A stretch of DNA of 64,000 nt from Vitrella brassicaformis CCMP3155 (Eukaryota; Protista; Chromerida), in NCBI GenBank assembly GCA_001179505.1, contig CDMY01000531.1, positions 248,001-312,000 on the forward strand. The letters run 5' to 3'. The notes beneath the pieces were generated by a model. The model saw nothing but the letters and a program-made list of their open reading frames with translations, did not search any database and was not told the DNA's origin. This document shows positions 23,033-30,025 of this stretch, one piece after another. Position 1 is the first letter of the stretch; the number at the start of each line of letters is the position of its first letter. The position numbers were made by a program, and so were the translations under genes.

Positions 23033-23433
23033 TCACCCGCCCAGCCGCCTCCCTCTGCCTTTGTCGAACCTCCTTTTTCCATTACCCCCCTGATCGCCCC
23101 GACGCTTGCTGCCGGCTGCAGAGAGGGGCTCATAGACGTGTTTGTCGCTGTCGATTCGCCGCCTCAGCCACCGGGGGGCCGACAGCCACGCATAGCCTCC
23201 CATACCTGGGTAGATCTGACGCACACAGCCAGACAGGCAGACACAGAGGGCAGTGTGTGTGTGTGTGTGTGTTTGTGTGTGGGTGTGTGGGTGTGCCCAC
23301 CTGGTTGAAGAAATGGTAGAAGTGTCCGGTGGCGATGCCCATCAGGTGGGGGATGGCCGCGTTGATCTTCTGCGCCGACAGCACGTCGATCACCGCCTGT
23401 GCGAACGGCACCTTCCAGTACTGAACCTGTGTG

Positions 23434-23465
<32 letters not shown>

Positions 23466-24274
23466 CCCAACAGCCACACACCGTTGCACATGCCACCCCT
23501 CGCACACACACAAACACCCACACCCACCCGTATATTTAGGAACACCGGCACCATCGCGAACGGCTCTCTCCGCGAGCAAGCGTAGACGAGTGCGCTGCTG
23601 AACGCCCTGCCCGTGAAGGGCAGCTGGAACCTAAAGCCGATCAGCGAGAGCAGGATGACCTGCGTCAGCATGAACACCAGCTGCTCGGCGCTGCCCTTGG
23701 CCTCCTCCAGGCTCTGCCCATACTGCCACATAAAGTACATGGTGCTGATCATCGACAGGGTCAGGTCGCCCTGGAAGGCCATCGCCGTGAAGGGCCGCCA
23801 GAACTCAAAGGACCGCACTGTCCGCTCCCACTCGAGGGCGAACACCGAGGGGTCGACAGAGAGGGGCTTCAGCTGCAGCAGGCTGAGCAGGAGGGCGAGA
23901 GAGAGGTACAGGCGCGTGATGAGCTGGATGTTGGTGTAGATGCGCAGCACGGGGGCGATCCAGTTGGAGTAGAAACTCCGCCCGGGACTCTGGCTGAGCT
24001 TCCGCACGCCCTTGGGATCAGCTGTGGTGCGCCGCTGACGCCTCCCCTTTGCCGGCCCTCTGCTGCTGGCACGCGCGCCGCCTCTGCACGTAAAGAGAGC
24101 ATCCGGTGGCCTTGTCAGCAGAACACTGGATGGGCGAAGGTCGACCGGTCTGCTTCTTCGCACAGATGACACCCATCTGCCCTCCCCGCCACTCGGTGCA
24201 TGGTCGACGGGGGATGGATCAATGCAGAAGGCGATGTGCGCCAGGAGGAAGATCAGCAACCACGGGAGCTTCAT
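23033..24274 (-). CDS. DER1: Derlin/Der1 with signal peptide plus basic transit-like extension (probable plastid SELMA Der1), 3 exons
   Basis: Signal peptide MKLPWLLIFLLAHIAFC, then an Arg/Ser-rich segment, then ITRLYL...FEFWRPFTAMAFQG...YGQSLE...LVYACSRREP...HLMGIATGHFYHFF...GRGRRLGG*. The WR, LE, GH and G.GR.LG Derlin motifs are present. Confidence 0.85.
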
Positions 24275-24592
24275 TGTCAGGCAACAGCTGCAGACGTGGG
24301 AAGATGGATGGGCGGGAGAAGTGTGGTTCACAAAGCGGAGGAGCCGCCCTTCTGTTCGTTCGATGGGAAGGAGATGGCGGAGAGCGGGTGGATGAATAGA
24401 TCTGACGTTCTCGGGCGCCCTCACTGCAGGCCGAATCACTAAGCTCGCAGATCGGAGGGAGAAGCGGGGCAAAGCGAGAATTCGCCCACACCAGGGCTGT
24501 CCGAGCGTCACTGCATCGTCTGACCTGTGGAAGCAGTAGCGGGCGGTGCTCTGTCGGTGAGTGAGTGACTCGTTGTGGACGACGCGTGTGCG

Positions 24593-24964
24593 ATGATGAC
24601 GGACAACATCGTCATCAGCCGCGAGGAGATCGTCAAGGAGGGTTGGCTGTCCAAGCAGTCGAGGTTCCTCAGGGACTGGCGGCGCCGCTGGTTCATCCTC
24701 ACCCCACACTACCTCGCCTCATTCAGGAAGCAGGGCCAGTACACCAACCCCACTGAAATCCTCCGCCTTCGCGACTGCTCAACCGTCAAGTCGGCCGACG
24801 ACGAGGTCCACAAGGACAACGCTTTTCGCGTCGACACGCCGGGCCGCGTGTTTTTCCTGGTGGCCGACACGACGGCTGACAAGGAGAGCTGGATTGGGCA
24901 CATCGGGCGGCAGATGGTGCGGCCGAGCGTCATGACTGACTACGATGACGGCATGGAGCAGTGA
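24593..24964 (+). CDS. Single PH-domain protein (AtPH1-like), intronless
   Basis: KEGWLSKQSRFLRDWRRRWFIL...CSTVKSADD...FFLVADTTADKESWIGHIGR is a canonical PH domain. Confidence 0.9.
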   Translation: MMTDNIVISREEIVKEGWLSKQSRFLRDWRRRWFILTPHYLASFRKQGQYTNPTEILRLRDCSTVKSADDEVHKDNAFRVDTPGRVFFLVADTTADKESWIGHIGRQMVRPSVMTDYDDGMEQ

Positions 24965-25862: not shown

Positions 25863-26907
25863 ATGCACCCTCACCATCCGCAGCTCACCAAGGCGCAGGA
25901 GATCTGCCGTTTCTATCAGCGCAAGTTCCCGCGTGTCCCTCCCCTGTCAGTCGACGAGGCCGTCCGGCTGCAGTCGGCGGGAGAGAAGGTGCTTATGGTC
26001 GACTGCCGCACCGCAGAGGAGATGAGCTGCTCAATGGTGGACGGGGCCATCACTCTTGAACAGCTGGAGGAGGCCGACGAGGCAGATCTGCAGGCGGCAA
26101 CGATGATTGTGCCATGTATGTGAGCTGCCAGCACTCAGGCATCGCACTGACTGACAGGCAAGGAGAAAGTGAGACGGCAGACAGACAGACAGACAGACAG
26201 ACAGACCAAAGCAAACGTGCTTTGTCTGCCTTTGTCTGTTTCTGTGTGTGCGTGTCCTTGTCAGATTGCAGTGTGGGCTACAGGTCAGGCATCGTGGCAG
26301 AGCGACTCAGGAGGCAAGGCTACGAGGTATCTACCTACGGCGAATGAAGACCACACACATACAATGCAGCCCAGCCCCCTATCATGGATGGATTGCGATG
26401 CACTGGTGTGCGTCGGTCGGTCAGAATGTCCGCAATGGTGACGGCATCGTCTTGTGGGCCTGGCACGACTGGCAAAAACAGCACCAGCAGCAGAGCCAAC
26501 CTGCCGACCCAGCCACGGAGCCCTCAGCGCCATCGCCCCGCCTAGTAGTGCCCAGCCGCCAGCCGCCCGAGGTAGCGGATTCGTCACCCTTGCTTCTTGA
26601 GAAGAGCGGGCAGCCGACACGGGTGCACGTCTTCGGCTCGATGTGGAGTCATCTGCCGCCAGGCTATCAGGTGACTGACGGTGGGGTGGCACATCCATCC
26701 ATCCATCCATGTGTGTCCCTTCCCTGCGTTGGAATGGCGTGCTTGTGTGGCGATCAGGCTGTGACCTTCCCGCTGTGTCGGCAGCTGGCAGAGATTGTGT
26801 GCATTGTGGCCTCTCGTGTGGCGCAGATCATGAGATGCGAACGGTGTGTGTGCGCGTGCACTTGTCTGCCTTCCGGCTGCCGGCCATTTGGTCTGCTTCC
26901 AACATAG
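25863..26907 (+). CDS. Rhodanese-domain (sulfurtransferase-like) protein
   Basis: KVLMVDCRTAEE...MVDGAI, and active loop YCSVGYRSG formed across a splice junction, then NVRNGDGIVLW and VHVFGSMW. Start codon uncertain. Confidence 0.75.
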
Positions 26908-27215
26908 GCGACCAATGTCATCCATGTGTGTGTGCATGGACTGGACGACAGACAGACAGTCCCTCCCTTCGACTCAAGAGAAGTGCCTCCACGCGCCGAC
27001 AGAACCACATGCATGAGTCAGCGTTACACCCACATTGCAGCACACACAACACGCACCATTGTACTGGCCCAGGGCGATTTGGCATTGCAAAACTGATGGC
27101 AAGCACTGCTGCAGGCAAGTAGAATGTCGCCGACGCGTGCACGCGCAGGGTTCGTCGATGTCAGACCCGACTCAGGGAGGTCTGCGCGCTCAGCTCACAC
27201 GGATCGTCTGATGAG

Positions 27216-28999
27216 ATGAAGAAAAAGATCAAGAAGCCCGGGAAGGCGTCAGCATCTTGCCTACCTCCCAAGCAGCACGGACGTTCTCCACGGGACGGAT
27301 CTCCCGCTGCTGCAGAGGAGCAGCAACCATCCCCTGTGCCGAGGAAGCCCACCGAGAAGTTCATGAAAACCGACAAAGAAGTGGTTGAAGAGTGGCTTCC
27401 CTACACGAAGGTGAGTACGGCGAGGGAGGCACAGAGAGTGTGTTCTGCATGCCACCGCATTACTCCCGCCTCTCTGGTGCGGTGCTGCATGTAGGTGGGA
27501 GAGGTGATAGCCGTCCCCGGCCAGCGTCATTGCTATCTAGTGGCCGCCAAGTGCCCCCTCAGCGCGAATTTCGACCGCTGCATGGTCAGTGAGGACGACC
27601 ATTTCAGCCCTAATGAGATGCTGCAGATAATGGCTCGGCGAGGGCTGCCCGTCACAGCTGTCATCGACCTCACCAACACCAAGCGATACTACGACCCTGC
27701 TCTCTTCAAGAAGCAGGGCGTCGCTTACCACAAGCTGAGAGTGCTCGGCCGACAGGCGCCCGAAGCCGCACATGTGGCCGAATTCACCGGCCACATCGAT
27801 GAGCACTTCGCCGCCCACCCGTCGCCTTCTCAGCAGCGGCCCAAAGTGGTCCTGACGCACTGCACACACGGGGTCAATCGGACGGCCTTCTTCCTCATTG
27901 CTTACCTCGTCAAGAGTGCCGGCATGACCCTCGAGGCCGCGAAACATCTTGTCGAGATCAGGAGGGGGCACCCCATCAGGCACAGCTATCTGATTGAGGG
28001 GCTCACCACGATGCTGAGTGGGGGCGGCGAGAGGGGTGGCGAGAGCGGCAGCCAAGACAGCGGCGAGAAGAGGTGCAGGGAGGGTGGTGGTGGCGGTGGC
28101 GGCGGTGGTGGGGAGGGCCACACGGCCAAGAAACGGAAGACGGGAAGCGTGCCGACCTTCCCATACGACACTGGTACGTGAGAGGACACACACACACAGA
28201 CAGGCTGACAGGTGCAAACACTCCTCTGTGTGTGCTGTGGTGCATTCACTTGCAGCGTACAATGACCATTTCGAGACCCCCCTTGCCGCGTATCAGGACA
28301 TCGCGCCCGCCCTGCGGCACATTGCGGAGGGGCTGCGCAAGACCAGCGGCGAGCTGCGGATCTACGACCCCTTCTACTGCACGGGCAAGACCAAAGGTGA
28401 TCAACCATAGAACACACACACACCTCTCTGCAGCACATCCGTCGCATCCACACGTGTGTGTGTGGGTGTGCGTGTGTGTGTTCAGTCCATTTGCACAGCT
28501 TGGGGTTCAGGAGCGTCATTCACGAGAAACGGGACTTCTACTCTGACGTCAAGAACCAGGTGAGTGACTGAGTGAGTGACACCAACACAGCGCAGCGCAG
28601 CACAGCACAGCGCAGCGCAGCTGGACGGACACAACGTGTTGTGTGTTGCGTGAATGGCATGCAGACCGTCCCCGAGTATGACGTGATGGTGACCAATCCG
28701 CCCTTCAGCGACGAACACAAGGAGGACATCCTCCGCTTCGCCCTCAGCTCGCCACAGCCATGGTGGATGGATGGATGGATGGATCAACACACAACAGAGT
28801 GGCATGTCCGCGTGTGCGTCTGTCTGTCTGTCTGTTGTCTGTCGACCAGTTTCCTGCTGCTACCCAACTACGTGGCCACCAAGGGCTACTTCAGAGAACT
28901 TCGGCACCGCCTCGACCGGCTGCAGCGCGGCTTCTTCGCCGTCCCGCCCCTCAAGTACACCACACCACACCACACCACACCCAAACACACTCGTCCACC

Positions 29000-29034
<35 letters not shown>

Positions 29035-29416
29035 GTACGAGTACTCCCACCCCGAGAACACCGGCCATGCATCATCCCCATTCTTCTCCATCTGGTTCGT
29101 CGCCGCCGGCCACCAAGGCACTAACAACACCACCGATGCCACGTCGCTGTACCAGCGGTGGGTGCGCCACCTGCGGCAGGGGGGCGGGCCGGTCGGCATG
29201 GCCCTCGTGTGGACCGTCGAGGAGCTGCAGCGGCGCCATGTGGTCAGGGACGGCAATCGGCCGAACCCCAAGAAGAGAAGGAAAATGATGAAGGCCCGGT
29301 GTGTCGAGACGGAGGGGGTGCCGACATCAGAACCACAGCAACGGCCCAGCGGCTGCAAGAAGACGGCGCGGCGGAAGGCCGGGGCGCACAGGGCAAGAGT
29401 GGCGCCAAGCGGATAA
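27216..29416 (+). CDS. Fusion: PIR1/DUSP11/capping-enzyme-type cysteine RNA 5'-triphosphatase plus N6-adenine methyltransferase-like (NPPF) domain
   Basis: N-half: VIDLTNTKRYY...HCTHGVNRTAFFLIAYL. The same exon continues to FPYDT, spliced in frame (G|gtacgt...cag|CG) to YNDHFETP...IYDPFYCTG...LGF...DFY...DVMVTNPPFS...FLLLPNYV...SPFFSIWF. Confidence 0.8.
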
Positions 29417-30025
29417 GTAGATGTGGTGTGCGCCTGGACACGTGGACGTGTCGGTTTCGGTTCCACCCTGGCCTCTTGTCGTCAAAGTTCCGTTCCACAC
29501 TTGCACGTCACCGCGTGCGTGTCGGCCGACTCGTGCGCGTGTGTCGTGCGGGTGGGGTGATGGTGTGTTGAAGGACCAGACCATCTGTGGCGTTTATCGC
29601 TGTGAGTGTATGATATGCGAGAACCGCTTGTGCGTCGAGCGACGATGGATGCCGATTCGATTGAGAACATGAGTTGGTTGAATTGTTGATTACATTACGC
29701 TACGCAAGAAAGGGGTCCACAACACGAACACAGCACACGCATCTGCACACTCATCTATCGTAGGTAAAAACTTGCCGGCTCCGTCATACTATACTACAAC
29801 GCACCGTCCGTCCATTCCATCAGCTCACCCATTTAACCATCCATCCACACTGAGTGTACACACACACACGGGACAGCCCAGGGACGACACGTGCGAGAGG
29901 AGGGAAAAGAAAAAGGATACACCCACCAGCCAACCACCAAAAAGACGAGGCCCAAGACAAGAGGCAGCTCACCCACTCCTCCCCCACTCCCCCACCCATC
30001 CACTTCATGCCTGCAGTCAGTCAGT

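Follow-up and report, generated by a model that had tools for sequence, protein, structure and literature searches.

A predicted RNA 5'-phosphatase joined to a member of an orphan methyltransferase family in a single expressed gene of Vitrella brassicaformis

Here, we describe a gene of the chromerid Vitrella brassicaformis CCMP3155 that is expressed as one mRNA and that brings together a phosphatase related to the RNA 5'-triphosphatases and a methyltransferase from a large, otherwise unannotated family of eukaryotes. The gene is located at positions 27216-29416 on the plus strand of a stretch of 64,000 nt (contig CDMY01000531.1, positions 248,001 to 312,000), which we call the window and to which all coordinates refer. 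It consists of seven exons with a total of 1674 nt and 557 codons and ends with a single terminal stop codon, as checked by a script for both frames and splice sites. All six introns are of the GT..AG type and 80-105 nt long; in general, the short GT-AG introns of the window, which has a G+C content of 58%, are rich in CA/GT repeats. The pairing is a new architecture made from known superfamilies that is found in one lineage so far. Based on motifs and fold models, the product is predicted to be a two-domain, nuclear RNA-modifying enzyme that acts bifunctionally on RNA ends, a reading to which we assign a probability of roughly 55%.

The gene is a single, real transcription unit. The stretch is present in seven public runs from four studies, and contigs from four of the runs were aligned to positions 27000-29700. 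In three contigs, each from a different study (X1, 1061 nt; X5, 3564 nt; X6, 2319 nt), every spanned intron is missing: After the stated shifts of the cut positions, the joints lie at the modelled sites 27410/27495, 28173/28256, 28396/28486 and 28559/28665, and for the two introns that are masked as repeats the flanking contig coordinates match 28762/28850 and 28954/29035 exactly. Exons 1 and 2 are joined in all three contigs. A fourth contig, X7, represents the unspliced form. Because all six introns were lost precisely, we take X1, X5 and X6 as cDNA; it is formally possible that a processed DNA copy is the source of the intron-free contigs.

A previous reading of the window from the sequence alone had proposed that the two halves are spliced in frame at 28172/28256. 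This joint is indeed present in X1, X5 and X6 and has been kept in a second genome (see below), but the donor site was misplaced by one base: the G at 28173 is still exonic and begins a GCG codon that the intron splits. The same reading had regarded the FPYDT motif at the end of exon 2 as part of the linker. In fact, the motifs of the methyltransferase family begin with FPYDT, and inspection by eye revealed that it and the beginning of exon 3 align to the family without a gap across the splice junction. Since exon 2 alone encodes the phosphatase as well as the first methyltransferase motif and since the splice occurs inside a conserved motif, the fusion is not a read-through artefact. Moreover, there is no in-frame methionine codon between the linker and exon 5. 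This finding and the contigs that splice through the junction contradict the scenario that could have overturned the sequence-only reading, i. e. transcripts that terminate at the unspliced TGA codon and a methyltransferase with a start of its own.

The fusion has a counterpart in an environmental relative. The best match of the whole-library search, P0001, is encoded on the ENA metagenome contig L001 (2811 bp), with a called DSPc gene directly upstream, and L001 is 87% identical in nucleotide sequence to positions 27081-29995 of the window. All seven exons, all 12 splice dinucleotides and the ATG codon of exon 1 are retained. The insertions and deletions in the exons are without exception multiples of three (+3/-3, +6, +9/-6), while the lengths of four of the six introns differ by non-multiples of three (22, 10, 4 and 11 nt; the remaining two by 6 nt), and the homologously spliced frame is open over about 560 codons. 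The Nei-Gojobori dN/dS ratios between the window and L001, which are based on 80 substitutions only, are 0.27 for the phosphatase core, 0.48 for the methyltransferase and 0.38 overall. The conserved exons and splice sites, the open frame and the dN/dS ratios therefore indicate that both halves and the junction between them are under selection. Within the window, no second copy of either domain was found.

Two observations concern possible alternative transcripts of this locus. Intron 2 starts with GTACGTGA, and two codons beyond the junction it contains an in-frame TGA codon (28179-28181) which, as recognized in the sequence-only reading, ends the unspliced frame. Judged from its sequence, retention of this intron would yield a clean phosphatase-only product. 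The stop is kept in L001 (P0186 ends with ...FPYDTGT), and among the contigs examined no RNA contig with a retained intron 2 was seen. In the X5 contig, which extends 1.2 kb further upstream, 57 nt at 27208-27264 are omitted, and with them the ATG codon at 27216; the omitted segment has the ends CT..AC, which correspond to GT..AG on the minus strand. X6 begins at 27210 and retains this ATG codon. The skip may reflect an antisense spliced transcript that covers the 5' end of the gene, or the assembly may have joined this gene and its upstream neighbour into a chimera.

Both sequence and model comparisons place the N-terminal half of the protein with BVP, PIR1/DUSP11 and the triphosphatase of capping enzymes, as had been proposed before. 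Exon 2 matches the Pfam family DSPc (E = 2.6e-13), and each of its nine matches among the PDB sequences is BVP, PIR1 or a capping enzyme: the E-values are 1.2e-18 for baculovirus BVP, 6e-16 for human PIR1/DUSP11 and 2e-15 to 1e-14 for the triphosphatase domain of the mouse and human capping enzyme (Mce1). Both signatures of the subfamily are present, the HCTHGxNRT form of the P-loop HCxxGxxR(S/T) and the (V/I)IDLTNTxRYY motif; in the sequence alignment, the segment RVLGRQAPEAAH that corresponds to the loop preceding the P-loop in BVP contains no Asp residue. An AlphaFold2 (AF2) model of exon 2, calculated from a shallow alignment, reached a mean pLDDT (predicted local distance difference test) of 70, with most of the core above 75 and the exon-2 residues 178-226 below 50. 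In a Foldseek comparison with this model, ranks 1-16 are taken by BVP, PIR1 and the capping-enzyme triphosphatase, and all protein phosphatases rank lower. Besides the L001 copy, the nearest database proteins in a word search with exon 2 are animal PIR1-like proteins (30-37% identity).

Among the known systems, PIR1/DUSP11 and BVP are thus the best matches by sequence and fold. They share with the window phosphatase the HCTHGxNRT loop, the IDLTNTxRYY motif and an RGHPI segment; however, the identity is only 28-37%, and these proteins stand alone or carry low-complexity tails whereas the window domain precedes a methyltransferase. The metazoan and plant capping enzymes (Mce1/RNGTT) resemble the window gene in that the same triphosphatase fold is the N-terminal part of a two-enzyme polypeptide. 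Their partner is a KxDG guanylyltransferase, i. e. a nucleotidyltransferase, rather than an amino-methyltransferase, and no guanylyltransferase domain with the KxDG lysine was detected by Pfam on any exon of the window gene.

As judged from sequence, the methyltransferase is part of a large orphan family of eukaryotes whose members normally stand alone. A phmmer search with the first 80 residues of exon 7 against 1.84 billion representatives yielded 30 proteins, and a word search with P0003, the closest full-length member, retrieved 339 family proteins, so that the family has at least 339 members. The named members come from Chlamydomonas, Volvox, Gonium, Haematococcus, Nannochloropsis, Ectocarpus and other brown algae, several diatoms, a chrysophyte, Incisomonas and Euglena. 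All of them are called hypothetical or uncharacterized, with the exception of P0163 that bears the automatic UniRef label "Site-specific DNA-methyltransferase". Pfam gave no significant match for ten family members, NCBIfam none for the family, and a search of the PDB sequences was negative both with a single member and with a profile of 106 sequences. With single methyltransferase exons and with full-length family members, Pfam, NCBIfam and PDB searches returned at most weak local matches around NPPF, and the ESM-Atlas feature search with exon 7 gave no usable match.

In a typical family member, a core of about 230 residues comes after a basic tail of low complexity, and the five methyltransferase exons of the window tile this core in the proper order with 41-58% identity. 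The motifs follow each other as in the family, i. e. (F/Y)P(F/Y)xxDYxDHFETP, YDPYYCxG, RDFY, TNPPYSxxHKE, LLMPNYVA, YEYxHPEGTGHxxSPFxSxWF and RPNPxQRKK. Among the 106 aligned members, the D, P, C and G of YDPYYCxG, the D and Y of RDFY, NPPYS and the H of HKE are invariant, as are further residues within the last two motifs. The window protein thus shares all family motifs in order, including the C-terminal stretch of the KRPNPKQRKK type, and differs from the other members (P0003, P0016 and others) in that they have a basic low-complexity N-terminal tail where it has the phosphatase; these tails are at the same place as the KKRK patch of the window protein. All motifs named in the sequence-only reading (HCTHGxNRT, VIDLTNT.RYY, KKRK, FPYDT, DHFETP, IYDPFYC.G and NPPF) are present, and its assignment of the C-terminal half to the Rossmann amino-methyltransferases agrees with the tiling of the exons and with the fold described below. 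With a phosphatase exon that matches solved RNA phosphatases with E-values down to 1e-18 and five exons that tile a methyltransferase family in order, the signal is far beyond chance.

Two further observations were made on this family. In P0062, a chrysophyte transcript of 467 aa, the NPPYS...LLLPVY segment is duplicated internally in tandem, and this is the sole family member with a precomputed Eco57I Pfam tag. A likeness of the C-terminal stretch L..L...g.v....RPNPKQRKK (29200-29284 in the window) to the N-terminal part of ribosomal protein L19e was not significant (E = 0.7) and was rejected; the stretch may simply be a basic helix.

The fold was modelled on residues 55-284 of the family member P0016, with an alignment of 106 sequences, as a stand-in for the window protein. 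The AF2 model reached a pLDDT of 93.7 and a predicted template modelling score (pTM) of 0.89. The best Foldseek matches are PacII, M.TaqI, HsdM and TrmN (E about 1e-3), and in an exhaustive alignment Z-scores of 9.4-11.0 were obtained for lmo1582 (a putative S-adenosylmethionine (SAM)-dependent methyltransferase), DIMT1, DrdV, PH1948, METTL5, MmeI, HsdM and M.TaqI; the gamma-class members DrdV, MmeI, HsdM, M.TaqI and PacII cover the range of 9.4-10.6. In agreement with this class, the motif order X (FxTP helix), I (DPFxxxG) and IV (NPPF/Y) is present in the window gene. M.TaqI and HsdM (EcoKI) as well as the phage proteins of phrog_799, which provide the sequence link, share this order. In contrast to M.TaqI and HsdM, the orphan family is eukaryotic with basic tails of the nuclear type and has no target-recognition domain or DNA specificity subunit: the P0016 model ends with a helix after the catalytic domain. 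The writers of N6-methyladenosine (m6A) and its cap-adjacent form m6Am in RNA, METTL5 and PCIF1, have the NPPF-type catalytic motif as well, and METTL5 reaches a Z-score of 10.3; however, neither has a detectable sequence relationship to the window family, which contains no WW or helical domain. Kinship to PCIF1/CAPAM was rejected: there was no match to its PDB sequences with a single member or the profile, no WW match, and PCIF1 is absent from the 50 best fold matches of P0016.

In the ESM-Atlas, the fold neighbours of the family comprise two large clusters of eukaryotic "hypothetical" proteins, a cluster from chlorophytes and phage EcoRI-methylase-like proteins; the chlorophyte cluster is a structural sister (template modelling (TM) score 0.79), and every member of it has a CCCH zinc finger. 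A feature search identified small phage and giant-virus methyltransferases, and by tblastn a podophage gene (Lau218 phage) with 27% identity to the methyltransferase was found. Taken together, the predicted fold of the family is M.TaqI/HsdM/METTL5-like, and the sequence comparisons indicate a distant kinship with the phage DNA methyltransferases of phrog_799. Iyer, Zhang and Aravind (2016; PMC4738411) have described a group 2 of predicted N6A-methyltransferases, the third clade of which occurs widely among microbial eukaryotes, is often fused to CCCH or KH domains, and has cognates on mobile elements. The orphan family is probably this clade (CHLREDRAFT_205675-like); the range of organisms, the CCCH-bearing cluster and the phage cognates fit.

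The window gene and L001 are the only copies of the phosphatase-methyltransferase fusion that were found. The sequence-only reading had suggested a search for the fusion in other protists, and among the family members listed L001 was the only addition. No precomputed PF00782 domain is present among the 120 matches listed (of 339) in the word search with P0003, nor in any of the 57 matches of a search for long members with P0040 (limited to the 8000 candidates that share the most words), and the direct Pfam scan of ten of the 30 phmmer matches, including all five with more than 400 aa, did not detect DSPc. The word search with exon 2 returned six matches; it covers proteins of 124-395 aa and is thus blind to fusions. 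In a scan of the JGI metagenomes with exon 2, a single distant PIR1 of the animal type (L003) was detected that is not a fusion. The absence of the fusion elsewhere is provisional because of the length windows and word filters, because 219 of the 339 matches were not listed, and because the full-length window protein itself does not appear in any of the search results. The literature that we searched contains no paper on a PIR1-type phosphatase fused to a methyltransferase. The earlier statement that no characterised protein with this pairing is known is thus in line with the literature and the family members listed, but the methyltransferase itself is not a one-off.

A different fusion was found in the marine environment: P0153 (518 aa), encoded at positions 193-1749 of the Tara Oceans marine eukaryotic contig L002, has an N-terminal 2-oxoglutarate (2OG) oxygenase joined to a methyltransferase of the orphan family. 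The best solved relative of this oxygenase is the RNA m6A demethylase ALKBH5 (4e-8), and by sequence it is possible that P0153 combines an eraser and a writer in one chain.

How might the two domains work together? By homology to BVP, PIR1/DUSP11 and Mce1, the cysteine of HCTHGVNRT would remove the gamma, and probably also the beta, phosphate from RNA with a 5'-triphosphate via a cysteinyl-phosphate. As suggested by motifs and fold, SAM would be bound by acidic residues within YDPFYCTG and RDFY, and the methyl group would go to an exocyclic amine that is held against NPPF, N6 of adenine being the most likely one. The tether between the domains, the ALKBH5-like fusion and the CCCH-bearing sister cluster are consistent with the idea that the two domains share one RNA as substrate; in addition, the CCCH and KH fusions noted by Iyer et al. 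in a clade that is probably the same as this family link it to RNA. The phosphatase may process or recognize the triphosphate end of a transcript that is uncapped or not an mRNA, such as an RNA polymerase III (Pol III) transcript, a product of an RNA-dependent RNA polymerase (RdRP) or a foreign RNA, and the methyltransferase may mark an adenine in that transcript. Two basic patches, the KKRK of the linker and the RPNPKKRRK close to the C-terminus, suggest a nuclear enzyme. In the Vitrella lineage, the fusion was probably created when a gene of the PIR1 type became linked to the basic N-terminal tail of a normally stand-alone methyltransferase gene. Viral multi-domain capping enzymes such as poxvirus D1 (triphosphatase-guanylyltransferase-N7 methyltransferase) likewise combine a triphosphatase with a methyltransferase on a single chain. 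Unlike the window gene, D1 uses a metal-dependent triphosphatase of the triphosphate tunnel metalloenzyme (TTM) type and a guanine-N7 methyltransferase, with a guanylyltransferase in between.

Several observations weigh against an RNA-end enzyme with two coupled activities. The fold does not discriminate between substrates, since DNA enzymes and RNA enzymes such as DIMT1 and METTL5 match P0016 at equal Z-scores, and the only significant non-eukaryotic sequence relatives of the methyltransferase are phage DNA methyltransferases, with a PHROGs link to phrog_799 ("DNA methyltransferase") at E = 1.4e-10. In addition, the window gene deviates from its family at two strongly conserved positions: It has NPPF, as does L001, where 106 of 106 aligned members have NPPY, and it has ENTGH instead of EGTGH, a change from G to N at a nearly invariant position. 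The small number of substitutions behind the dN/dS ratios belongs here as well, as does the fact that the runs are not recorded as RNA and were studied as contigs rather than raw reads. Finally, the fusion has been seen in this lineage only, and the pairing could be a lineage-specific accident that does not involve any coupled chemistry.

Of the alternative explanations, a role in the capping pathway survives best, even though we regard it as rather unlikely. In this case, the phosphatase would be the mRNA capping triphosphatase, with the guanylyltransferase encoded elsewhere, and the methyltransferase would write cap-adjacent m6A(m) in the manner of PCIF1. The match to the triphosphatase domain of Mce1 is almost as good as those to PIR1 and BVP, and NPPF is the motif of PCIF1, too. 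However, the gene lacks the guanylyltransferase domain, the nearest named homologues are PIR1 proteins and not capping enzymes, and PCIF1 was not recovered by sequence or among the best folds although its structures are in the PDB. Moreover, the stand-alone family members do not have any domain for binding the C-terminal domain (CTD), and to our knowledge the alveolates studied so far cap their mRNAs with a metal-dependent triphosphatase of the TTM type. With a still lower probability, the methyltransferase could be a phage-derived DNA enzyme that forms N6-methyladenine (6mA), and the phosphatase would have another role, either regulatory or on nucleotides. The link to phrog_799, the fold similar to M.TaqI, HsdM, MmeI and DrdV, and the name of P0163 would fit, but this name is an automatic label, the core of only about 230 residues comes without a target-recognition domain, and the partners found in fusions are all linked to RNA, namely the RNA phosphatase, the ALKBH5-like domain and, in the sister cluster, the CCCH zinc finger.

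It is very unlikely that both domains act on proteins, as a dual-specificity protein phosphatase and a HemK/N6AMT-type methyltransferase of glutamine or lysine. The Pfam match is to the generic DSPc family, glutamine methyltransferases are found among the NPPY enzymes, and the fold lists contain HemK and Mtq2 at lower rank; yet HemK-type enzymes score lower than nucleic-acid enzymes, HCTHGxNRT and IDLTNTxRYY are both present, and RNA phosphatases outrank every protein phosphatase. The idea that two adjacent genes were joined by read-through, mis-assembly of a contig or a wrong gene model draws on the use of contigs that are not on record as RNA and on the 5' end of X5 that looks chimeric, but it is effectively refuted by the first methyltransferase motif in the phosphatase exon with the junction inside it, the lack of an internal in-frame methionine codon, the identical joints in three studies and the frame kept in L001.

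Table 1. Features of the phosphatase-methyltransferase gene (window coordinates)
Feature	Position	Strand	Remarks
Exon 1	27216..27410	+	start codon (first in-frame start), basic N-terminal tail, first residues of the phosphatase domain (EEWLPYTK); ends in phase 0
Exon 2	27495..28173	+	cysteine-phosphatase core, Gly-rich linker (predicted disordered), KKRK patch, FPYDT
VIDLTNTKRYY motif of the RNA-phosphatase subfamily	27660-27692	+	sequence alignment
P-loop HCTHGVNRT	27858-27884	+	codon of the nucleophilic Cys 27861-27863; invariant in alignment with PIR1-like proteins; aligns with the P-loop of BVP
KKRK basic patch in the linker	28128-28139	+	read from the sequence; possibly similar to a nuclear localization signal
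FPYDT	28158-28172	+	start of methyltransferase-family homology inside the phosphatase exon; family starts with (F/Y/W)P(F/Y)xxDYxDHFET
Intron 2	28174..28255	+	82 nt, GT..AG; skipped in contigs X1, X5 and X6; 10-nt deletion (not a multiple of 3) in L001
Exon 3	28256..28396	+	motif X DHFETP 28264-28281; SAM motif I YDPFYCTG 28363-28386; 54% identity to P0003
Exon 4	28486..28559	+	LGF..IHEKRDFY segment; RDFY at 28530-28541, D and Y invariant in the family
Exon 5	28665..28762	+	catalytic motif IV NPPF 28695-28706, followed by S..HKE
Exon 6	28850..28954	+	LLLPNYVATKGYF segment; junctions agree with the coordinates of contigs X5 and X6
Exon 7	29035..29416	+	YEYSHPENTGHASSPFFSIWF end of the core, conserved RPNPKKRRK 29258-29284, basic tail, stop codon 29414-29416

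Upstream of the gene, inspection of the open reading frames by eye suggested a rhodanese-like protein (25863-26350, plus strand), a PH-domain protein (24575-24964, plus strand) and a Derlin-like membrane protein (23390-24709, minus strand).

The methyltransferase family is present in several major lineages of algae and protists and has so far neither a Pfam model nor a solved structure nor an informative annotation. We do not know of any earlier phosphatase of the PIR1/DUSP11 type with a covalent link to another activity that modifies RNA. The natural fusions to an RNA 5'-phosphatase and to an ALKBH5-like domain give rise to a concrete and cheaply testable hypothesis, i. e. that RNA is the methylation substrate of the entire orphan family, which possibly modifies it at the 5' end or close to it. 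It is tempting to speculate, although we consider this doubtful at present, that the fusion serves as a Rosetta stone: The family, in green algae, stramenopiles, Euglena and chromerids, might then write adenine methylation independently of PCIF1, a role not recognised so far, and do so either at RNA 5' ends or close to them, or on RNAs with a 5'-triphosphate, for example Pol III transcripts and RdRP products. In Vitrella, the removal of the 5'-phosphate and the methylation would be coupled on one polypeptide and would mark the identity or maturation of the RNA. If this is true, the finding would bear on the way in which cells mark and mature uncapped triphosphate RNAs.

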